A stretch of DNA of 63,820 nucleotides, counting the filler, from Hyphochytrium catenoides (Eukaryota; Protista; Hyphochytriomycota): assembly GCA_900088475.1 (NCBI GenBank). It is 5 parts of 5 records of this genome, joined end to end, with 100 filler letters (N's around TTAATTAATTAA, not from the genome) between each part and the next. Parts side by side here need not be neighbours in the genome. Positions count along the whole stretch, not along the records: positions 1 to 24,070 come from FLMG01004065.1; 4 more parts are not named here. One strand, written 5' to 3'. Shown in pieces: positions 3,828-24,070 of the stretch (positions are counted from its first letter, which is position 1; each line of letters opens with the position of its first letter). The translations under genes and the position numbers were made by a program. A model generated the notes under the pieces. It saw nothing but the letters and a program-made list of their open reading frames with translations. It was not told where the DNA came from and did no database searches.

Positions 3828-6800
3828 TCACTTCTCTTCTCTCTCCCTCTCTCGGCCCTGGATACTCTTCCAGACCCTGAACCACGGTCCATTTTTTGGG
3901 ATAAAGAAGTTGTTGACCTCCTTTAAGAAGCGCCGAGGAAAGGATACCGAGGGAGAGACACTCTGGATCTGTGCCAAGTAGGCACGGATCTTTTCCTTAT
4001 CTATAGGCAAAAGGGGGAGAGAGCAGTCGCTGGGTTCTCCTTTCCCATCGGTTCCATGGAGCGAAATGGGTGATAGACCTTCATCGAAGAATGCAAGAAG
4101 GAGAGCAAGAACGATGATAGCACTGACTTCATTTCCTGTCTCGCAAGTAACTACGCATCTCCCTCCTTTACCGCTGAGAAAGAGAGGAAAAGCACTCGCA
4201 ATGGCCTGCAGATATTAAGGGAGAAACAAGGTCGTTAGAGACGTAGCCTTCTCTTTCAGCGAAACAAAGAAGAGAGATCCAAGAAAGGAAAGAACGTTGC
4301 TGGGACCCATGTAGATATTCAACGCAAGGGAAGAAAGGCAAATGCCGAGAGAAGGGATATGAAGAGAAGCACTGTCACTACAATAATAGCAAAAGCATGA
4401 AGTTTTCGTTATCTTGTGGACAGCGTGAGGGAGATCTACCGATGAGAGAGAGGGGTAGAGAGAGAAGAGTACGAAAAATGGTGAACCCGCCTTGGGAAAG
4501 ACCTCGGTCTGCCATATAGTCTTGTTCTTCTCCTTCTTAGACGCAGTCAGCCCGCAGTAGATGTACCGTGTGTCTCCTTGCAGGAACGAGCAAGGTTGGG
4601 GAGAGCCATCCAGTAAGAGATCAACCTCCTCATCTCCCAGCATCAGCGGAAGTGAAAGGCTGGAGAAGGTGGCAGAGGCGAGAGCTGAGGAGGGGGCAAA
4701 GCCTATTCCAGTCTCTCTTATCCAGGTCACGCACTTCTCTCCTTCCATTAACTGACATTCGCCTGCTTTCTCTTTGAGTAACAGACTGTGGATAAGATCC
4801 GCTGCTCCTTCCGCCGAGAGAGAGCCATCCAAAAGCTCCTCCTCGTGCGACCAGAACAAAGAAGGAGAGAGACCCTGTGCCCAGGATTCCTCATCATCTG
4901 CTGCACCTTGGATGTAGGGCCAACTGCCGATGATACAGAGCACAACAGTGTAAGTAGACTGGGAGGCAAAGGGCAGAAATGAACAAGACGACGAGCGTCG
5001 TAGTGCCAAGGGTAGCAGGACCAGACCGGGGAGTAATGACGATAAGAAAAGCTTGTGAAGCGTCGGGAGAGAAAGAAGGCCTTTCCCTTAAACGGATGTG
5101 ATCAAGAAAGTGAAGGCATAGGACCAGCAAGAGCGCTAGAGAGACAGCAGAGGGAAACGCGAAGTGGGAGAGGAGAGGTGACCTGTACAAAGACTTGAGG
5201 GCTACATTAGAGATTAGCCTGCTCGCGGAGACACATATGATCGGTGTAAAAGCTCTTTGTGGAGTTTGCCATTGTGCTTGTTCTCCTTCCACACGTTCCG
5301 CGTCATCTGCTTCCATGCTCCTCATTGTTTCGTGAGTGAATTGGTCTTCTCCGTCTCCTTCGTCAAGGTGTATGCTTCCGTCCTCGGTCTCCCATAGAAT
5401 GTCGTCTGGGTGGTGCGATAAGACAAAGGAACTGCTGAAAATAGCATTCAAAACTGAAGAAGAGAACAAGCACGAGAAAGAGACAGACCAGGGGTGCGAG
5501 GCCAAAAGAGAGGAGAAAGGTGGAAATAAGCAAGAGAGGGAGAGAGAGAGAGACAGAGAGACCGACCAAATGACGAGGACAAAGGTGACGGTGCACCTTT
5601 TGAAGCTAAGAGAGACTGGCTTTGACAGTGTGGAAGGAAGTGAGGTGCGTGTTGGCGACCACGACCGGCGAGACATCCCTTCCGGGTAATTCCTTACCTC
5701 TACAGATCCAGACCGCTCGCAGAGGTTTGGTAAGGGCTTGTTTCAGATCTTGCAGAATTATCGCCCGAGCGGGCGTCGCTCTCTCTAGCAGGAGAGGAAT
5801 TCTGGCCTAACATGAAGTAGTAGAGGAGTAAGAACAAAAGGAAGGCGGTATCAAGAAGAGAAGCAAAGGCGCTAGGGAATACTGCAGAAAGATTGAGTGT
5901 GTTAGACCGCCAGATGATGTGCTTGTCGAGGATGAAGGCAACGAATAGTGAGCACATGAGAGAAAGACAACGGCAGTGACTGTCACATCATTAGGGGAAG
6001 GGGAAGCTTCACCGAGCATCACAGAAAGAGAAGCTCGTCAAGAAGAAGGAGAGTAGTACAGAGCCCTAGCCCCCCGTATCTCCCTTCGCTCCCTCCCTCC
6101 CTGCTTGCATTTCTGTCTATCTCACCTTAATCTGTGCTCTCTCAGACGAGCCAACCCATTCTGGAAGGTGAAGTGACGTATCCCAGGCGCCTCTCCCCTC
6201 TCCCTCAACATGTTCATCTCCCTCTTCTTCGTCATCTTTCCGTCTTTCTTCAGCTAGTAAGCTGTTCAGCACACAGCACCAGATCGGTATAGTCTTGCTC
6301 AAGGAATCGGGAAATTTCTATTGTGTAGGAGAAAATCGTCAATGTCATGGGAAGAGTAGCTGCAGCGTGGAGCAAAGAGGAGAAAAGCTGAGCTAGAGGC
6401 GAGAAATGGAGTTTGAGCCGTATAGAAAGAGCAACGTAGAAGCACCACAGAGCGAAAGAAACTACGGACAGGGAGGCGCGAGGACAGAGCAGAGGCAATA
6501 TTAAAAAGAGAGGCGGAAGCCAGAGAGAGAAAGAAGGGAGTGAGAGACAGAGAGAGAGAGAGAGAGATGTTTCCTCAAGGACCTTTCCTTGTCTGGTAGA
6601 GTCCACTATGATGCATCCAGCGTGAGTGGCGGCTGAGAGAGCCACGTGAAGATTGAGACGAGAGAGGGAAAAGTCCCATTGTCCTTGATGCCCATCATTG
6701 GACTGCAGGAGAGAACATAATGAGCACGGGTAAGGGCCGATAACTGAGCAATCTAGGGGACGCGGATGACTTAAGGCGCCCCAGTAGCATTGGCCTTTAC

Positions 6801-7719
6801 GCGCCGAACATCTCAACAGAAAGCCAAAAACATTGAGAGGAGATAGCGACAGTGATGAGGATGTAGACGGAAATCAGAGCAACTGCCAGGGGGAGAAGGC
6901 GCGAGGTTACCTTGAAGTAGCACTTCCCGTCAAACTGACGGGAGTACCATAGTCCTTGACGCAAATTGCCAAAGGCTGGATACCTACCGTCGCAGACCAG
7001 CAGAGGATGAGCGGGAGCGATGATCAGGACGGACGAAGGGCAAGAAGCCTGCAGAGAAGCTCAAGGAAGAAAGAACCAGGCACGCAAAACGGGGAACTGG
7101 AGAAGAGGCCGAGTCGAAAGGAGGGGAGAAGAAGAGATACATGGGCAGAGAAAAGAAGGGGTAAGTTAAGGCAAAGAGAGACAGCTCTGAGTCGACAGAG
7201 CGGCTTTAGAGAGATAGAGTCAATGAGCAAGGTTGCCTGACTTGAACAAACACTTCCGGACTTGGTCGACGTAGTCAGCATCCTCCTTTATGGACCTGTC
7301 AGCACGGTGATATATCGAACAACGGTTAAACCAGCAGCAAAGCGAGCAAGAGGAGAGTGCTACTTCAGACGAGAGACCAAGAGCGTGCACGAATTGGGGC
7401 TCCGGCGAAGTGTGAGGAGTCTTTGTGTATGTATGAATCTCTCTTAACAAAGGGACAACCTTTAAGAGAGACATGTGAAGGTTGGGAGGGAGAAGGCTAG
7501 GCGCCAACAGGGAGAGAGGTACCTGAGATAATTTCTGACATCTGCCCGCTCCGCTTGCTTCAGCTTCCTCCGCAGCTTGCCGATTCCGAGCTCAGAGGGT
7601 GGAAGGAAAGACGATGGCGACCAGGGAATTGCAGGCGAACCGTCATCACTGCCGTCTTCTCTCTCAGATGGGTCATGAGGCAGAGAGCCCGTAGAGAGGC
7701 TCTTCTCTTTCCTACTCAT
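3828..7719 (-). CDS. RIT1: tRNA A64-2'-O-ribosylphosphate transferase (initiator tRNA phosphoribosyltransferase), multi-exon
   Basis: Spliced Rit1 motifs in the expected order: FGNLRQGLWY, CYFK|SNDGHQGQWDFSLSRLNLHV, GCIIVDSTRQGK, SKTIPIWCCVLN, LHLPEWV, KPLRAVW, IICVSAS, YIQGAADDEESWAQGLSPSLFW, then the C-terminal DUSP-like region VVTCETGNEVS..IDKEKIR..LKEVNNFF. ATG at 7719, stop at 3828. Confidence 0.9.
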
Positions 7720-7879
7720 CTCGCTCTCGCTGGCTCTTGATGGGCTGCTGACATCGTTCGACCCTTAATCGCTCTAATGTCGAGCACGCATCTGCCTGCG
7801 GCTTTCGAAAGACATGATGAGTCGAAGGGATGCGAGAGGTACCAACCAGAACTTAGCGAGCAGTATCGGGGCAATCAGA

Positions 7880-8071
7880 GGGAGGCAGAGAGCGAGCCAG
7901 AGACAGTCAGAGATGGAAAGGAGAGAGAGAGAAAAGAGAGGAAGGGAGTGGGCGAGATGACAGAGACAAGAGAGAGAATCAAGGAGAGAGAGCGAGAGAA
8001 AAAGAGAGAGAGAGAGAGAAAGAGAAAGAGAGAGAGAGAGAGAGAGAGACACAGAAAGAGACAGAGACAGA

Positions 8072-8123
<52 letters not shown>

Positions 8124-8160
8124 GAAAGAGAGAGAAAGAGAGAGAAGGAGAAACAGGGAG
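7880..8160. repeat. (AG)n / purine-only microsatellite tract between divergent genes
   Basis: Near-pure A/G run on the + strand between the RIT1 start (7719, -) and the MFS gene start (8692, +). Confidence 0.9.
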
Positions 8161-8691
8161 GGGGTACAGTAGCTGGAAAGCTCTTCTGGACAATCAGAAG
8201 CCATCTCCTCTTGATGGTTGTGCCCCAGAGAGCCCCTAACGGCCATTCTCTGAAGGTTATCACTTCGAATCCTAGCTTGATTATCAGTAGGAAGGCCTCC
8301 GTCCCGCTTTCTTCAGAAAGAAGCAAAGAAGGCAGCGCCCAGAAACTGAAAAATGTTAGAGCTTTTCATCTTCAAGTCCTCTCAATCCGCAAAAGTTCTG
8401 CAGATCTTCATGACGTGGAAGCTATTCATGATTCCTAGGAGGCTGCCACACGCCGTGCTAGGAGCCTGTTGGCAACGAGGACCAGGAATCGACGACATTT
8501 CAGCTCTGGGTTGGCTCTCTTGTCTGCAGTTTTTTCTGTGAAGGGCACTAAGCGAGACCCTATCAAGTCAGTCAGCATCGGCGGAGTGCAGCGCTTCCAA
8601 GCTCCGATACAGCTCTGGAAGTTCGCTCTCGTGCCCTCAGGCCAGAGTCATGACGTAAGGGTTACAGCGCTTTCAAGCGTCTTAAATAGCC

Positions 8692-11600
8692 ATGATGGCT
8701 AGCGCACGAGGCACTGCTTCTCCCGTAAGCGATGAACGGCGAGAAGGGGGAACTTCATATAGAGGCACCCGCAGGGGTGACGAGCAGGAATTTGGCTCAA
8801 GAAGATGGCAATTGAACCAGTGCATCTTTTGCCTTGTTCTCGTGGCCGACTTCCTGCCTTCTGCCTTACTCCTAATATTAGCTCCAGCACTTGGAATCTT
8901 TCTCCCCGGTGACATTCAGTTAACGACACACTCTGGAGGTATGTGCAGTCTCTTTCCATCCTGTCACCTTCTTGACCCTTTGTGTACGGGCAACTCAGAG
9001 CTTGCTGCTTTGATCTCTCTTCAGCTTCTGCAGTAACGAACAGACACGCGCTCTTTTCCTCTCCGTCATTAGTTCTCTCTCGCCCTGTAGCTCGCTCTCT
9101 TTCGGACATTTCCCGCTAAACATGAAATGTCGCTGTTTGTCGTGCTACTAAATGGACAACTCGTCGCGCATTCGCGCTCTGCTGAACTCTGCAGGAGGGT
9201 CTTCGCCACCGTCCAAGCGGCCGAGAGATCCTGAGGATTTAACTTTAGGTCATGATTGGGCGGACTCTGTAGCCATCGCGGGCTTTATCTATTTCACAGA
9301 GCTTCTCGCCTCTGGCTGCACCTTCTCACTTTGGGATATCTTGGGCAACAGGTATTCGCACTCTTGGGTACCTTCATTGTCTTGGTCCGTAGCCTGTCCA
9401 TAGCCTTTCCTCTCTCCTCGAGGCATCGTCAAAAGGGTTTATCACTGTCTGTCCTACCTCGGTTTCTTCTTCGAAATCCGCCCTTTGCCCACAAGCTTCT
9501 TCAAGAGGCCTGGATAGAAAGCATTTCTTCACTACTCCTTTCCTTTCTCTTTGATTGCATTGCTTTTCCTCACCGCAGCGTTCATTCTCTGAAATTTTGC
9601 CTCCCGCCCCTCTTTCCTCAATCTCTCATTGCGAAGAATGGGGAGACGGCTAGTCCTACTATGTAGCCTCTCGTCCTCTCTCTGCAGTCTTTATTTCTTA
9701 GGGTTCTCCACAAGCAGTGGCTCAGTGGTCCTGAACCGGATAATCTTTGGACCATTGTCAGCAGTCCAGCCGATAATCCGGTCACTATGTGTAGAAGCAC
9801 AGTGGTCAGCATCTCTCTACTTTAGGGTCTGCTTCTTCCTTGATTCGCTCCTTCTTGTCCTTGTCCCCTACCATCAGTGACATAGTCACTCCACTCTACT
9901 CTACTTCTTCCTCCTTTTTAATCGCGGTTGCCGCCTTTCTGGTTTGACTAGCCATGCTGTTATATCTCACCTGTGTCCTGCTGAGCTCTTACTTTTCTTT
10001 TACTTGCGCGGCTTTCTATCCGCGCATTTATCCCTTCTTCTCCCGATCACTTTGTTTACGTTCTCCTGTTGATGGCTGACAAGTCCGCTTCTCTCTCTTC
10101 TCTTATATAGGGGCATCTATACCACGATAGTCAAAGTGGCGCTCTCCTCCTCCGTCCTGCTAGCAGCCTTCCTCTGCTGTATTGCCTATGGTTCCACTTC
10201 CAGAGACCAAAGATATGCTTCTCAATTTCTCTCTACTGTCTGCTTCTTCTCTTCCCTAGTTGTGGGAGCCATAATAGCTACTGCCTGGCTGGTCTTTCCT
10301 TCTTCATTAGCCTCCTCCGGCTATGCGGAGGTAATGGAAGAAGGAGGAGGAGATACCTTTAGTGGTCTGGCTCTTGATTTTCTAGAGGGAGATGGGCGAA
10401 GCAATGGAGCAAAAAGGGGTGTTCTCTCTCCCAGGCGGCAGCGGAAACAGAACGAAAGAAAGGGAACCCCAACTCTAGCCTCAATGTCCAGAGGACAAAG
10501 GGGATTTGGACCACGAGATCCAAACTTCTCTCCGCTCGCTCTTCCCCCGCAGCAGTTCCTCGAGGCAGAAGGCGGCAAGCTCCAGAATGCTGTCAGAAGA
10601 TGGAGAAACACTCTTCTCTGGAGAGAGATAAACAACGTAGGGAGTATCATCGACCGACCCTCTCCTCTCTTCTTTGAAATCAAGCAAGTGTTCCCTCATT
10701 ATTTCCACGGCAAGAGTGAGAGGCAAGAGCCTCTCTTGGTCCTAAAGTGCGGCAGAGTCGCTCTGTCATCCATCAAAAATGGGAAGATCGCCCCCAAGGA
10801 CTTCGAATACCACTTCGTTTTCCTCATGGAGTATGCCCTTAAAGTGTTCTCGCCGCCATCCCCTTCTCCCTCTCCTTTTCCGTCTCTGCCTCCTGCTTCT
10901 GAGGGTGAAGATAGGAGGGAAGACGATGGGGCGATAGAGCAGAAGTCAATGAAGCTCCTTGTTCTCATTGACATGGCTGGAGTTCGCCTTCAAGACATAA
11001 GCGCCGAGGTATCAGATTTAACTCCTCATGGCTCACTGTCTGTTCGTTCCTTCCTGCATCCGTATGTTGTTCTGGCCTTTTGCTTGTCTTGTCCTCGTCT
11101 TAAAGTCTCTGTCCTTTCCACTTCGTCTCTCTCTCACGGCCGCTATGTGAAAACATCTCTTGTAGGTGTTAGCATATCTCCAGACGGTAGTGAGCATGCT
11201 TCAGACCCATTACCCGGAGAGAGTGTCTCAGGTCTTCGTGGCCAATGTCCCGTTTTGGTTTGACATACTCTGGAAAGCACTCTCTCCCCACATAGAGAAA
11301 AGGACCCGCAAGAAGATTCTCCTCCTGAAGACAAGATCATTGTTGGAGGATACGCTGTCTCGGATATTCTCTCCGTCGCTACTTCCTATCGAGTACGGAG
11401 GGCTGTCAACGCTTGTCTTGGGCGAGAGTCTAGAAGAAGAGGATCTTACAGATTATGTCAAGGTGAAGCTGAAGGAGGTGTTCAAGGAAGAAGCAGGGCT
11501 GCTCCAGACGGCTCTGGAACCCCGGGCTTCTCCTCTGTCAGGACCTATCCTATCTTCTCTTTCTAGTGATGATGACGAGTTTTTCGATGCAGAAGAGGAG

Positions 11601-12815
11601 GAAGACATGATTATCCAGTCCATAGAAGATGGCCTGTCATCCCCTGAAGCGGATGTATCGGCCAGTTTCGTCAATAGCCCAAGAGTTAGAGAAGTAAAGA
11701 GAGACTGGAAAGCTCAAAGCGCTCCGTCCTCTTCCTCTCAACCACCAATAGATAGAATGGGAGACACTGGCAGTCCGCCCTCTCCACGACGAAGGAAAGG
11801 CTCGTCCCTACCTTCTGCGCCCGAGAGACAAAGCTCGAATGTGGAAGCAGAGACATATCTCACGCAGAGAGAAGAGGACCGCCCGTCCGCAGAGCAAGCA
11901 CTAGAGCACTTGCAAGAGGTAGACCTCACCGACAACTCCTCTCCCTCCCTTCGTTCCTCTTCTGCCACCAAGAAGAGGGAAGAAAAGGGAGCGCTCTCCT
12001 ATCATGTCGTCGGTTCTGCTGCGCATGTCGAAGAGTTTGGGAGAACGGGGGACTCTCCTTCTGTTGTTCTTTCTACGGAGGCGTCAGGGGCTTCTACGCC
12101 TTCGGAGGCCAGCTATGAACTACACTTCCGCTCTGCTTTTAGCGTCTCGCTCCTGGCGAGAGAGAGACGTCTGGCGGATATCGCCAAGCTCCACGCACTC
12201 TTTTTGTCCTGTGAGGTCTCTCTTCTCCTTCTCTTTCCTATCTGGGGCTGGGGAAGATACACACACGGAGATCTGTCATTTTCTCTCTTGGGAGTCTGTT
12301 CTGCTCTCCTCTCGGGGGCCGCGCTCCTCTTGGTCTGGGAACTGTCTATGTCCAGCGTCATTGTTAGCTGTGTCAGAGGGAATGGGATGATTCAGGTCTT
12401 TTGTGTGGCCAGCAAGTGCCAGGCGATCCTCTCACTCTTGCTCCCTCTGGGCTCATGCTTAGGAAACTCTTCCTTTGGGGTGGGAGCCAGCTGGGTTATT
12501 GCTCTTCTCTCTCTCATCTCTTTCTCGTTTGGAGGCATTGCGTTCGCTGCTATTACAGCGCTGGTTGATAGAGTAGTGCATCAGAGAGAGAGAAAGCACT
12601 TTCATCGACTCGTTGTCTCTCTCTCACTGCTCGCTGCTTCTCTCTCGGTGCTTCTTCTGCTCTCGGTGGTGAGCTTAGGCAGCGTTCGGCTTCTGTATCC
12701 GCTGGGGACCGTATTGGCCTACGGCGCGATCGTGGCCGGCCTTTATCTCTCAGTCCGCCTTGCAGAACAAATCTCCGTCACTGATCTCCTGCATACACAA
12801 AGAGGAAGCGTGTAG
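8692..12815 (+). CDS. MFS-fold (ZIFL/TCR-Tet-like) membrane protein with a CRAL-TRIO (Sec14) domain and an FFAT motif in the central cytoplasmic loop
   Basis: Exons 8692..8938, 9249..9351, 9637..~9780 (donor uncertain), 10111..11008, 11166..12815. The N-half has a degenerate MFS motif A (WDILGNR|MGRRLVLL..GFS..NRIIFG). CRAL-TRIO motifs: QFLEAEGG..RRWRNTLLWRE, LVLIDMAGV, QTHYPERVSQVFVANVPFWFDILWKALSPHIEKRTRKKI, LPIEYGG. Then DDDEFFDAEEE, and about six C-terminal hydrophobic helices starting LLFPIWGWGRYTHGDLSFS. Confidence 0.85.
11577..11597 (+). other. Encoded FFAT motif (EFFDAEE) with upstream acidic/serine tract; predicted VAP-binding site
   Basis: GAG TTT TTC GAT GCA GAA GAG = E-F-F-D-A-E-E, an exact match to the canonical EFFDAxE. 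It is preceded by SSLSSDDD in a low-complexity linker. Confidence 0.85.
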
Positions 12816-14137: not shown

Positions 14138-17100
14138 ATGAAGATTATAGAAAAGATCAACAAGAGTATAGAACAAGACCAGCCTTTCTATTCGTTTGAG
14201 TTCTTCCCGCCAAAGACCGAAGCCGGCGTGCAGAACCTCTTCCAGAGAATGGATCGTATGGCCGCTCTGGAGCCTCTCTTCTGTGACATCACTTGGGGAG
14301 CGGGCGGCAGCACCAGTAACTTGACGCTCCAGATAGCCAGCAACGCGCAGAAGTTTAGTGGGCTGGAGATGTTGATGCACTTGGTAACTTAACGTCTCTC
14401 TTCTCTCTTTCTCTCTCTCTCTCTCTCTCACTCACTCACTCACTCTTTCTCTCTCGCTTCCTCCTCTCTCTCTTTCCTTTTCGCGCCGTCTGTTCCTATC
14501 TCTCTTTATCTCTATCTGTTTCCCCCTCTTTCTCTGTCCTGACCTTTGGGCTCCTGCCATCATGTGGCCTTCTTTCCCACCTTTACCTATTTCCCCTCGA
14601 TCTCTGTGAGTTGTGGCCGTTCTGTAGTCTGGATGACTATGCGCGGCCTCTTCTCGTCCCAGAGGTGCCTTGCCCTCCTTCCCTTTGCAAACCTACCGTT
14701 GCGCTAGGTCCTCCTTTCCCCTGGGTTCTGAATATCTTCTGTTAGCTCTCTCCTTTGTTTTACACCTCCGGCCCCTCTTCGTCTGTCTCTTCTCTGTCTC
14801 ATCTACCCTTCTCTCTCTCTCTTAACAAACGCTACTCCTCTTTTCCTTCCCAACCCCACCTTTTCTCTCTTCTCTTTTCTCTCTGCCTGCCGTACAGACT
14901 TGTACGAATATGCCTGAGAGCAAGCTGAAGGAGGCACTGGACACTGCTAAGGCCGCCGATATCTCTAACATCCTAGCTCTTAGAGGCGATCCACCTAAAG
15001 GTGTCGGCAAGTGGGAGCAGGCAGCGGGAGGCTTTTCACATGCAATAGACCTTGTACGCTACATAAAGAGAGAGTATGGTGACTACTTCTGCATAGGTGT
15101 GGCGGGGCACCCTGAGAAACATGCTGAGGCTCCTACCATGGTAAGTAGGCTTAGGTTGAGCTCGTTGGCCCCTACGATTTCCATTCTGATGATGCAGCTC
15201 TCGCATGCTTTGTGTCTATACTGCGTTGGGCTATGGCCTCTGTGACTCTCAATGTCCCTTTACTTCTCATGATGCCACCGCAGCCTATCCAACGCTTACC
15301 TGTTTTCGCTCCTTTCAGGATGATGATATCCAGCACTTATTGGAGAAGGTAGAAGCAGGAGCAGACTTCATTATCTCCCAGCTGTTCTATGATCCTGAGG
15401 CATTCTTGGTCTGGGAGAGGAAATGCAGAGAAAGAGGCATCACCGTGCCCATCATCCCTGGTATCATGCCCATTCAGAACTACACCGGGTTTATCCGAAT
15501 GGTCAAGTTCGTTAAATGCCACGTGCCACAGGAGGTAAGATGGAGAAGATAGGGCCGAGAGACGATGGACTGAAAGATGGGCGTGAGACATCTTTAGAGT
15601 GCTGCTGTCCCTCCTCGTCCCATTTCTCGGCTCAGTCCTTATCTTTTTATCAGGTGACAGGTGTCCGAAGTTCAATCACCTTACGCCTTCTCCCCCTTAC
15701 CCTTCCCTTTTTCTACTTGTCTACCAGGTGTATGACGGACTGGAGCCTATAAAGGACAATGACGAGGCCGTCAAAGAGTTCGGGATCCAGTACGCCATCA
15801 GGATGTGCAGAAAACTGTTAGATGAGGGGAAGAGAGAGGGAAAAGAGGGAGTCAAAGGTGTACATTTCTATACTCTGAACCTAGAGAGAAGCGTGAGAAG
15901 AATTCTAGAGGGGCTACAGCTCTCACCAAAGGTAACTGGTCGTGGTGAGCTCTACCGTTTCCCGCTCGATACGTTGTTCTCTCCCTCTCCCTACTCGTGT
16001 TCTTGTCTCTTTCTCACTCTGCTGCACATCTCCGCTTACTCTCTCGCTACTCCACCTTAATCCCACCACTCTTTCTCTCTTGCCCTCTCCCGCTCCTCCT
16101 GTTGGCCCTTACTGTATTCCTGCACTTCTAACTGAATGAACGGGGCTCTCTTGCTATCCGCAGTCCAGTGTAAGAGAGTTGCCCTGGCGGCCTTCTACTC
16201 TTGCCAAGAGAGAAAAGGAGAACGTGCGACCCATCTTCTGGGCAAACAGACCTAAGAGCTATATGCGAAGAACAGACAGCTGGGATGAGTTTCCTAATGG
16301 TATGCCAGGAAATATAGGCCGAATTTGCTGGCGGAGACAGTGACAGAAGAGAGTGCGAGGGCCTGCTAGAGTGGCTCTTACCTTTAGGGACCGTATGGGA
16401 GGCTCTACACTACTACTTACCCTCTCCCTTGCGTTGGTCTATCTTCCTTCCATGTACCTGGGACTGAGCCCTTCCTGTCTGCCTCTTGTCTTCGATAGGC
16501 CGTTGGGGAGATAACCGTAGCCCTGCCTTTGGAGAGCTGACAGACTCACACTATGTCCACTTCAGTGCCGGTTCAGTAGAAGAGAGAAAGGTAAATTCAC
16601 ACTTTCTACAGCGAATGGCTTACAGCTGAGATGATCAAGGATATGGGCAGAGGAGAGACCAGAGGGCAGCCAGAAGCACATCAAAAGAAGTTGATAACAA
16701 TGTTCTGGTCACGAAGAGCGAGCCAGAGCAATCCGGCGGGGTTGTTCTATCTTCATTAGTAGTGGCGTGCCCAAGTCCTGCTATCTTTGTCTTGATTTGG
16801 TATAACTGTTTGCGTCCTCTTTAATGTCCGCTAGGCTATGTGGGGGGAGGCCCCAGTGACCCTTGATGATGTCTACGAAGTGTTTGCCTCATATGTGGCT
16901 GGTAAAGTGCCCCGTCTACCTTGGTGCGAGACGCAGCTGCAGCCTGAGACAGAGATCATAGCAGACAAGCTGCAGAAGCTGAATAGATCAGGGTAAGTGA
17001 TATTCGGCCGCCACCTCCCACTCTTTGTCTCGAGTTCCTAGCTGCTTTCCTTTTTGTCTTCAGGTCATCTGCTTCGCTTCTCGATTTCACTGGTCTCGCT

Positions 17101-18140
17101 CTCTGCCCTTCCTGATACATTATGTGCGCCGCATCCTGTTCTTTTCTTTTGCCCAGTCCAACGTTCTCCCTAGTCTAACTCCTAATCTTCTCCACAGTTT
17201 CCTTACAATTAACAGCCAACCGTCTGTTAACGCTGCACCCTCCGACCACGCGGCCTTCGGATGGGGTGGTCCTGGCGGCTACGTGTACCAGAAGGCTTAC
17301 GTCGAGTGCTTTGTCTCACCAGCAAATCTCAGGGTCCTGATGGATCAGCTAGAGAACCATCCTTCCATTAACTTCTGCGCTGTTGACCATGCAGGCCATA
17401 CATACTCCAACTATAATGGCAAGGTACGAAATCATCGACGCATGGAACGGCTGTGGCATAGGGAGATCTATCACGCTAGTAGCCTCCTTCCTTCGCTCCC
17501 TTGTCCCAGACTGTCCCTCCTCGCCTTCCTTTTTGCCCCTTCAGGGCCTATCGACAGCCCATTGCCCTCTGCGTCGTCAGGTACCATCTTTTGCTTTGCC
17601 TACGTGGCTTCACGGCCTCTAGTCTTTTGGTACTTCCGCGAGGATGCCCAGCCCCATCAGATTCGAAACCTGACAGTTTCCAATGGCTTGTATCCCCTTG
17701 ATTGCTCCTCTGAAGCGTGTGACGGCGGTTACCTGGGGCGTTTTCCCTAACAAGGAGATCCTGCAGCCTACTGTGATGGACATCGACTCCTTTCTCGCCT
17801 GGAAGGATGAAGCTTTCAACCTCTGGGTCACGCTGTGGGCGTCCGCATATGATGACGATAGCAAGGCAGCAGTAAGCGTTGCACTGACTGGCTTCCAGCC
17901 TTACCTTGCTGCCTCCTCCTGACCTCCTCTTTCCTTTACTATTGGATGAGAGGTAGCTCTGAAATCTGATCCCGTTCTGCTTCCTCTCTCTTCTGCGCAC
18001 GTTCTCTCTTCCAGGAGCTCATTCACTCCATCCACGACACCTTCTTTTTGGTGAGCATCGTGGATAACGACTTCATTCACGGAAATATTTGGAACGTGCT
18101 TGATGCGTGCGTTTCCGCGACAGCCAATGGTCACTCATAG
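14138..18140 (+). CDS. MTHFR: Methylenetetrahydrofolate reductase (eukaryotic type, catalytic plus C-terminal regulatory domain), 10 exons
   Basis: Exons 14138..14383, 14898..15140, 15319..15534, 15728..15931, 16164..16299, 16499..16590, 16835..16992, 17198..17423, 17716..17871, 18015..18140, all GT-AG and in phase. Motifs: [107 protein letters not shown]. Confidence 0.97.
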
Positions 18141-22771: not shown

Positions 22772-23219
22772 CTTGGCCTGTTCTTGGCTAAAAGATGCTC
22801 TCTCCTTCTTTCTCTTGTCTCTTCTCCTCCTCACTCTTTGCCCTGCTTGTCTCTATTTGTTAGTATCAAAGAGCTTCCTTCACTCCCTCTTCGGCAGAGC
22901 TTCTGCAGATTAGTTGGCGGAGCTCATCAAAACAATGCCTTGGCCCTGGGCTTAGAAACGCACCACGGAGAGGAAGGAAAAAGGAAGGAGAACGAAAAGC
23001 CTTGCCAGGTGTCGGTGCTGTTGCTGCTCCTTGGAATTGACAAGAAGAATAATACAAAGAACCTGACGCTGCATAGGTGCTTCTGCTTCATAGACCTGGA
23101 GAGACAGGAACGTCCTCTTCGGGAGAAGGGATTCCCAGACGAGGTGAGAAAGGCAATTGTGAGACAGGAGGAAGACAGAGAGTTGAGGAGTTGTTGGGGA
23201 GTTGTGAGGGAAAGTGAGA

Positions 23220-23326
23220 GGGGCCAAAGAGGAGAGAGAGAGAGAGAGAGCGAGAGAGAGCGAGAGAGCGAGCGAGAGAGCGAGAGCGAGAGAGAGAGAG
23301 AGCGAGAGAGAGAGAGCGAGAGAGAG

Positions 23327-23359
<33 letters not shown>

Positions 23360-23608
23360 ATACAGAGGAAAGAATGAGAGGAAGAGAATGAGGGAACTTC
23401 AAAAAGGCAGGGCAGTTTCACCTCCTTCAAGGGCCCACACCAGGGGGACTACCATCTTCTCTGCCCTGATAACCGATAAAATGGTCTCGTTGATAACTAG
23501 ATATACCGCTAACGGCTAGGATCTCGGCGGCATGGAGCTCAGGATCTGAAGAGGGAGCATCAGAAGCCAAACTGCAAGTGGAAGAAGAGACACAACCGCA
23601 GAGAATAC

Positions 23609-23676
<68 letters not shown>

Positions 23677-23750
23677 GAAAGAGAGAAAGAGAGAGAGGAA
23701 AAGAGAGAGAGAGAGAGAATAAGGGAAGGGAGGGAGAGAAAAGAGAAGAC
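23220..23750. repeat. (AG)n microsatellite tracts
   Basis: Long AG runs at about 23230-23358 and 23612-23748 on the + strand. Confidence 0.9.
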
Positions 23751-24070
23751 CATCGTGCAGCAAGAGTGAGAGAGAAATAACACTCAGAGGATAAGCAGGT
23801 GATGCGGTAAAAGAGACTGCGAGTGCCTCGATCTGCCGACTCCATTCTAGAGAGACGAGGCCAGACAACAGCTAAAGATCGCGAGAGATAGTTTCCAGAG
23901 GTAAATAATCCGAGGAGGCTGAAGCAACCGAACGGCGGAGAAGAGATTGAGTCATCCGGACATTCCATCGCCATCTCATTCTGACTTTTAAGGTAAGCGC
24001 AGCGCCGGGCGAGGGAGCAGGGAGAAGGAAGCGAGGACGATACCCGTATCCGCAACAAACGAGAAACAAA

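Follow-up and report, generated by a model that had tools for sequence, protein, structure and literature searches.

STARD3 (MLN64), a late-endosomal cholesterol transfer protein, combines in one polypeptide a multi-pass anchor in a membrane other than the endoplasmic reticulum (ER), an FFAT motif (a pair of phenylalanines within an acidic stretch) that binds VAP or MOSPD2 of the ER, and a cytosolic lipid-transfer domain (PMC6030701; PMC7610837). MOSPD2 carries a membrane-anchored CRAL-TRIO domain, acts at ER contacts and belongs to the FFAT-MSP system (PMC9692390; PMC8996327). In a survey of membrane-anchored lipid readers, it was the only human transmembrane protein with a CRAL-TRIO domain (PMC9692390). 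We analysed a gene of Hyphochytrium catenoides (assembly GCA_900088475.1) whose product shares features with both. The gene lies at 8692-12815 on the plus strand of the stretch of DNA under study (the window, 63,820 nt; coordinates are positions in it), within the part taken from FLMG01004065.1. The order of the encoded elements was confirmed as six transmembrane (TM) helices, a Sec14/CRAL-TRIO domain, a Ser/Glu/Pro-rich linker with an FFAT motif, and six further TM helices.

The window protein differs from both systems. The anchor of STARD3 is a 4-helix MENTAL domain and its lipid domain is START, whereas the window protein has a predicted 12-helix transporter fold and a Sec14 domain. The STARD3 FFAT motif is non-canonical and its domains are arranged in series; the corresponding elements of the window protein are placed inside the central loop of the transporter. 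MOSPD2 represents the receptor side, with an MSP domain and a single C-terminal TM helix, whereas the window protein is predicted to represent the ligand side, with an FFAT motif and 12 TM helices.

We put a probability of about 0.5 on the reading that the window protein is a non-ER membrane protein that docks on VAP of the ER and, where the membranes meet, offers a lipid-transfer domain. Its body, a complete 12-helix transporter fold of the major facilitator superfamily (MFS) of the ZIF1/ZIFL1/YCR023C type, would lie in the non-ER membrane, and the FFAT motif would dock on the MSP domain of ER-resident VAP. This contact would place the Sec14 domain between the two membranes, where it could extract, exchange or present lipid. 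The linker of ~190 residues from the FFAT motif to TM7 would give the reach.

Gene model and domain order

Five open stretches (8692-8938, 9195-9351, 9637-9801, 10111-11008 and 11166-12815) are joined through canonical GT..AG introns into a single frame of 3117 nt, or 1038 codons. The ATG at 8692 has an in-frame stop directly upstream, the stop codon is at 12813-12815, and the 1038-amino acid (aa) product ends 18 residues after its last hydrophobic helix. Exon 4 is an uninterrupted open reading frame (ORF) in which TM5 and TM6 are fused to the N-terminal half of the Sec14 domain; exon 5 is likewise uninterrupted and joins the C-terminal half of this domain to the FFAT motif and TM7-TM12. Because these two exons each join membrane helices to one half of the Sec14 domain, the architecture does not depend on splicing alone.

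The same domain order was found in P0151/P0002, the nearest full-architecture relative, whose source is Ocean Sampling Day metagenomes. One ORF of 2.2 kb encodes all of P0151 with no intron; it was present on two contigs, in a compact eukaryotic contig. In blastp, the spliced model aligned with P0151 over TM2-TM6 and the Sec14 domain (4e-31) and over TM7-TM12 (5e-8), and no gap was observed at the junctions. The architecture and its conservation in a second organism are thus shown, and one gene that encodes, in this order, an MFS half, the Sec14 domain, the FFAT motif and the other MFS half, as proposed in an earlier note on this DNA, was borne out by the fused ORFs of exons 4 and 5 and by intron-less P0151.

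An artefact of the gene model, produced by the false fusion of two or three adjacent genes (MFS fragments plus a gene for a soluble Sec14 protein), is nearly excluded. The five-exon model was predicted from genomic DNA; a search for sequencing runs returned no RNA run, the three sequencing runs that cover the locus are genomic, and their contigs cross the introns and contain no joints. However, exons 4 and 5 each hold membrane helices and half of a Sec14 domain in one ORF, and the Sec14 fold requires both exons. The order TM, Sec14, TM also recurs in P0102, a "type:complete" ORF of an MMETSP transcriptome, as it does in P0151, and half an MFS fold alone would be non-functional.

Exon 1 (8692-8938) encodes an Arg-rich cytosolic N-terminus (aa 1-44) and TM1 (aa 45-71; 8824-8904), and ends at the donor AG/GTATGT. 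TM1 (LVLVADFLPSALLLILAPAL) is similar by eye to TM1 of P0151. Exon 2 (9195-9351; acceptor ctgcag/G, donor AG/GTATTC, phase-consistent) encodes the TM1-TM2 loop, TM2 (9260-9340) and the start of motif A, and was aligned with P0151 residues 51-84 by blastp. Exon 3 (9637-9801) encodes the remainder of motif A (G-N-R-M-G-R-R), TM3, and TM4 with its Arg...Gly motif. A split Arg codon (AG/A) at the exon 2/3 junction restores the frame, and the P0151 alignment is continuous through both junctions of exon 3. Exon 4 (10111-11008) encodes TM5, TM6, a loop of ~80 aa, a remnant of the Sec14 N-lobe (10547-10657) and the first half of the CRAL-TRIO domain, within whose fold lies a 35-aa Pro/Ser/acidic insert (10850-10954). 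The first part of exon 5 (11166-11408), which gave the PF00650 match described below, encodes the CRAL-TRIO C-lobe with the last residues ...LPIEYGG. Its last part (12180-12815) contains TM7-TM12, a short tail and the stop codon, as assigned by hydropathy and by blastp to the C-half of P0151.

Two variants of the model were noted. An alternative exon 3 donor at 9804 would add one Trp. By reading, an alternative in-frame intron 1 (8909-9248; weaker donor G/GTGACA, acceptor ...ctttag/G), with exon 2 starting from 9249, would drop 28 hydrophilic residues (DIQLTTHSGGGSSPPSKRPRDPEDLTLG) from the TM1-TM2 loop and bring it near the short loop length of P0151. Neither affects the architecture.

Variation among the sequencing runs showed that the frame is under purifying selection. 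There were 16 single-nucleotide polymorphisms (SNPs) in the 3117 nt of exon sequence (0.51%; 11 synonymous and 5 non-synonymous) and 12 in the 1007 nt of intron sequence (1.19%). Exon 4 had no SNP among strains, and all 6 SNPs in the C-terminal membrane half were synonymous.

Membrane halves and Sec14 domain

Hydropathy of the window protein alone gave 11 peaks. When the P0151 alignment was used as well, six helices could be placed ahead of residue 253 and another six beyond residue 828, in agreement with the expected 6+6 arrangement. MFS proteins have their TM6-TM7 loop and both termini in the cytosol. Counts of Arg/Lys in the window protein were 8 for the N-tail, 3 for TM2-TM3 and 4 for TM10-TM11, vs 0-3 for the opposite loops. 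These loop charges, together with this standard topology, are consistent with an N-in orientation in which the central loop faces the cytosol. They support the proposal that the lipid domain and the FFAT motif sit in a central cytoplasmic loop.

Evidence for an MFS fold came from several sources. A profile of the family N-half, window pieces included, was compared with PDB sequences, and its top matches were only MFS proteins (VMAT2, 9.8e-5; GlcP, GLUT1 and VAChT); the family C-half profile had no match among PDB sequences. An Atlas feature search with the window C-half returned generic multi-TM matches only, and by protein-language-model features P0151 fell among MFS clusters only. The window exon pieces matched Pfam MFS_1 with a non-significant E of 0.19. 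P0002 gave MFS_1 at 1.6e-15 and CRAL_TRIO at 4.8e-20 in a Pfam scan, and the precomputed Pfam annotation of P0151 holds both domains. The MFS identity of the window protein is therefore drawn from its homology to P0151 and from the Pfam match and fold of P0151. The expectation of MFS_1 halves flanking PF00650 and PF03765 thus held for PF00650, was mixed for MFS_1 (non-significant on the window pieces, significant on P0002) and did not hold for PF03765 (see below).

AlphaFold2 was run on P0151, which served as a proxy with ~22% identity to the window protein. A single sequence gave a predicted local distance difference test score (pLDDT) of 36, and a 49-row family alignment gave a mean pLDDT of 76. 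The model has six helices at 15-208, a Sec14 fold at 256-462 (pLDDT >90) and six helices at 521-724; segment 465-516, which contains the FFAT motif, had pLDDT <50. A Foldseek search of Swiss-Prot models ranked ZIFL1 first (E 1.3e-9, TM-score by hit 0.64, residues 13-717), followed by At3g43790, ZIF1 and yeast YCR023C (range for the group, E 1.3e-9 to 5e-7 and TM-score by hit 0.50-0.64). The P0151 middle matched Sec14 and SFH proteins. Against PDB, the membrane part matched NorA (TM-score by target 0.64-0.69) and GLUT1/3/4, and the middle matched AtSFH5, Sec14p and Sfh1. ZIFL1, ZIF1, YCR023C, NorA and the GLUTs were aligned across P0151 residues ~13-725 and thus across both halves. A Foldseek search of AlphaFold DB clusters showed that unnamed proteins sharing this layout are present in UniProt; among them, A0A484DT98 (1234 aa) matched P0151 model residues 15-731 with E 1.4e-26. 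The top accessions of this search appear to be oomycete and other stramenopile entries. Together, the N-half profile, the language-model features, the P0151 model and the Foldseek matches point to a family of ZIF-like MFS proteins whose TM6-TM7 loop has taken up a Sec14 domain. The DHA1-like MFS proteins ZIF1, ZIFL1, At3g43790 and YCR023C, which were the best structural matches to the P0151 halves, contain 12 TM helices, with motif A following TM2. They differ in that their central loop has no Sec14 domain and no FFAT motif, identity is 13-14%, and the window protein has Asn in motif A.

Motif A (consensus used, G-x-L-a-D-r-x-G-R-[KR], between TM2 and TM3) reads DILGNRMGRR in the window protein, across the exon 2/3 junction (9335-9351 and 9637-9649). 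Gly and Arg-Arg remain, and Asn stands in the place of Asp, as had been claimed for a degenerate motif. The further suggestion of a transport-dead anchor draws on this one Asp-to-Asn change. It is possible but not established, because P0151 (S-D-L-Y-G-R-K-R) retains the motif-A Asp and most family members, like the window protein, retain the TM4 Arg...Gly motif (Lys for Arg in three).

These features bear on a second explanation, in which the protein is a working ZIF-like drug/metabolite:H+ transporter, the Sec14 domain senses lipid and thereby gates or regulates the carrier, as SPX or STAS domains do in other carriers, and the FFAT motif only positions or regulates the protein. No lipid would then be moved between organelles. 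The complete 12-TM fold of the P0151 model, which matches ZIF1/ZIFL1, NorA and GLUTs, agrees with this explanation, as do intact motif A in P0151, the TM4 motif and the wholly synonymous variation of the C-half; in addition, many Sec14 domains are sensors or presenters rather than bulk carriers. However, the window protein has lost the motif-A Asp, clade B of the family (described below) has lost motif A altogether in the family alignment, and the pairing of a canonical FFAT motif with a lipid-transfer fold typifies lipid-transfer proteins of contact sites (PMC7610837). We regard a sensor-transporter as possible but doubtful.

A role in lipid transfer at a contact, which we prefer, places the MFS body outside the ER. 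The protein may instead reside in the ER, bind VAP in cis through its FFAT motif and reach another organelle or lipid droplets with its Sec14 domain. ZIF1 and ZIFL1 are plant tonoplast or plasma membrane proteins and YCR023C is a yeast vacuole protein; these structural relatives are not known to be ER proteins, which argues against ER residence. No targeting information was found in the window protein sequence, and MOSPD2, whose CRAL-TRIO role this arrangement would resemble, is an ER-anchored protein whose CRAL-TRIO domain is able to tether lipid droplets (PMC8996327; PMC9692390). ER residence appears unlikely.

The CRAL-TRIO domain was measured at 10547-11408, with a 157-nt intron inside, in good agreement with an earlier estimate of about 10540-11420. 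Exon 5 matched Pfam CRAL_TRIO (PF00650) at 1.2e-15 over profile positions 80-153 of 153 (the C-lobe), and among PDB sequences its C-lobe matched SEC14L2, Sfh1 and Sec14p (2e-7 to 2e-5). The N-lobe and first strands are in exon 4; this half was gapless across the splice junction to P0151 (the blastp alignment of 4e-31) and weakly similar to AtSFH5 (E 0.08). The earlier claim of a complete CRAL_TRIO_N plus CRAL-TRIO domain held for CRAL-TRIO. A complete CRAL_TRIO_N was not confirmed, because a scan of the window protein that admitted E values up to 10 gave no PF03765 match; of the helical lobe, just the final ~40 residues (FLEAEGG...WRNTLLWRE) can be recognised, against the end of the AtSFH5 lobe. 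In the alignment with Sfh1, window E-K-R-T-R-K-K lies opposite D-P-V-T-V-S-K, with the Glu, Thr and Lys positions kept. The Arg-Lys of N-lobe "ARKF" is replaced by Glu-Gly in the AtSFH5 alignment. The positions that probably correspond to the phosphatidylcholine-binding Ser/Thr of Sec14 seem hydrophobic here. The domain thus resembles Sec14p, Sfh1 and AtSFH5 in sequence and, via P0151, in fold; those proteins are soluble or peripheral, and the window domain differs in its 35-aa insert, its reduced N-terminal helical lobe and its Glu-Gly pair.

FFAT motif and relatives

The linker (aa 585-825, 241 aa; 11451-12173) is hydrophilic, rich in Ser, Glu, Ala, Pro and Asp, and by composition probably disordered; it lies within the TM6-TM7 loop. 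SSDDD-EFFDAEE was read at aa 622-633, with the core at aa 627-633 (11577-11597). The FFAT consensus is E-F-F-D-A-x-E with an acidic flank (PMC7610837), and all six specified positions were matched exactly by the window core. The motif with its flank (SLSSDDD-EFFDAEE-EEDM) spans 11556-11609: the core is preceded by the six residues L-S-S-D-D-D, with more Ser upstream, and four more acidic residues follow it. The description of a perfect FFAT motif therefore stands. The motif probably occupies an exposed, disordered and cytosolic position, the cytosolic side being inferred from MFS topology and loop charges. No variant was observed in it in the deep runs X1 and X2; in a 3x contig, a one-base deletion in a stretch of five T (T5) has the look of a homopolymer error.

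In P0151, the Sec14 domain is immediately followed by S-S-D-S-D-S-D-F-F-D-C-A-E, in family alignment columns shared with the window motif. To estimate chance occurrence, each loop was shuffled 200,000 times and the pattern [DE]FFD[AC].E was counted. The match rate was 6e-5 for the window loop and 1.5e-5 for the P0151 loop, or ~1e-9 jointly. No strict FFAT motif was found in 164 other fetched proteins, mostly with Sec14 domains.

An exhaustive HMMER search with exon 5 against 1.84 billion cluster representatives gave no match below 1e-30; the window protein and its close orthologues are thus absent from that collection. Among the top 150 matches, about a dozen had hydrophobic halves flanking a central CRAL-TRIO domain, and a profile search added more. 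Word-based searches with the family alignment, P0151 and the P0151 Sec14 region returned only clade-B members or nothing new, and two metagenome scans, one queried with exon 5 and the other with P0151, yielded no relatives. The relatives with named sources are from stramenopiles (Ectocarpus, Phaeothamnion, the diatom Proboscia and MMETSP transcriptomes), and all are labelled "hypothetical" or "unnamed". The best-scoring exon 5 match, P0001/P0154 from Proboscia alata (1288 aa), contains a tandem pair of CRAL-TRIO domains, with a near-identical segment "EEKLP.RFLAA.KGNV.QGWIRYNATK.WREKEG" ahead of each, and no flanking membrane halves.

Clade B includes P0045, P0017, P0019 (Phaeothamnion), P0026 (Ectocarpus), P0102 and others. 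Like the window protein, its members consist of a TM half, a CRAL-TRIO domain, a long linker and a TM half; the halves are alignable and share the TM4 Arg...Gly motif and "P.W...GG.G.S" in TM7. Unlike the window protein, they have no FFAT motif and no motif A, and their linker has an invariant motif of its own, A-x-L-G-x-x-N-x-[YF]-x-[YF]-D-x5-W-[VT]. This was defined in alignment A6 (P0045, P0017, P0019, P0026, P0035, P0038, P0050, P0145, P0004, P0064 and P0069), and may serve for docking in its own way from the corresponding part of the loop. It extends to ...W-[VT]-[LMI], often followed by E-[RK]-x-[LIV]-[VI]-R-A-I-[QE]-A-A-H. It had no match in Pfam. Profile matches in PDB were designed Kelch repeats, which were treated as an artefact of summed weak "YD....W" matches. 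It may resemble a conserved stretch near the C-terminus of fungal Sec16.

In a maximum-likelihood tree, the window protein and P0151 grouped with 88/87 support. Both have long branches, and for that reason the grouping of the FFAT pair is suggestive only. The tree did not resolve one shared fusion event for both clades.

Several observations weigh against a contact-site role. The FFAT motif is present in only 2 of about 21 family proteins (the window protein and P0151), which are those on the long branches, and 19 related clade-B stramenopile proteins are without it. P0002, from a sister metagenome sample, differs from P0151 at one internal residue in 715, a Phe-to-Ser change at FFAT position 2 that results from a single T>C (TTC>TCC; L003:1641-1771 vs L001/L002:6350-6480); this may be an error or a real allele with a disabled motif. 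Conservation of the motif in relatives, which the earlier note had proposed to check, is thus mixed, with an aligned DFFDCAE in P0151 on one side and its absence from clade B and its change in P0002 on the other. Points already described add to these: the non-significant MFS_1 match of the window pieces, the lack of a match for the C-half profile, the use of P0151 as a proxy for fold, the Glu-Gly pair and the hydrophobic residues in the Sec14 domain, and the genomic basis of the five-exon model.

The sparse distribution of the motif, the P0002 change and the fact that the rest of the linker is unalignable would all fit a further explanation, namely that the FFAT-like string is a non-functional by-product of an acidic, Phe-containing linker and the protein is simply a Sec14 protein with a membrane anchor. 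However, the exact agreement at every specified consensus position, together with the acidic flank, the recurrence at the aligned position in a homologue as distant as P0151, and the joint shuffle rate all argue against it, and we consider it quite improbable.

Implications, strain differences and neighbouring sequence

Full-text literature searches for a protein with MFS and CRAL-TRIO domains found no paper. The statement that no protein with this architecture has been characterised agrees with these searches, and is to be qualified in that unnamed stramenopile homologues are already in public protein sets. The modules and the logic of tether plus transfer are known; their embedding in the central loop of a transporter is not previously characterised. 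The lipid-transfer proteins described to date at contact sites rely on simple anchors or on peripheral targeting domains.

If the window protein binds both VAP and lipid, the FFAT-VAP tethering code would be seen to work in stramenopile-type protists, far from animals and fungi. Docking on VAP with presentation of a lipid-transfer domain would also provide a natural case in which the conformational change of a carrier could couple to lipid hand-off, and a working hypothesis for ~20 unnamed stramenopile proteins (oomycete-like, brown-algal, diatom and picoeukaryote). The family would comprise two clades, one with an FFAT motif and the other with a different conserved putative docking motif.

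MFSD2A, Spns1/2 and LplT are active MFS carriers of lipid or lysolipid. In a "flip-and-ferry" form of the proposed role, the MFS body would carry lipid or lysolipid through the membrane in which it sits and pass it directly to the loop's Sec14 domain for delivery to the ER via VAP-FFAT. We see only a slight chance of this. If true, a single protein would mechanically couple the movement of lipid across a bilayer to its transport between organelles.

In runs X1 and X2, contigs at 9327-9462 and 12305-12356 were present as two variants of near-equal depth with 4-5 differing sites, which is consistent with a heterozygous diploid or with a culture of two strains.

Two neighbouring genes were recognised. 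The minus strand at 4215-6816 contains an intron-split gene for a Rit1-like initiator-tRNA phosphoribosyl-transferase (Pfam Rit1_C, 4.8e-16 and 6.2e-12 in two exon ORFs), and the plus strand at about 15600-17750 contains an intron-split gene for methylenetetrahydrofolate reductase (Pfam MTHFR, 1.2e-13; MTHFR_C, 5.4e-17). Long (CT)n/(GA)n-like tracts occur at 7774-8326, 22900-24058 and elsewhere, and give SLSLSL or ERERER when ORFs are listed. On the sense strand of each gene, introns and intergenic sequence are rich in pyrimidines, so that the composition skew changes direction with the orientation of the gene.

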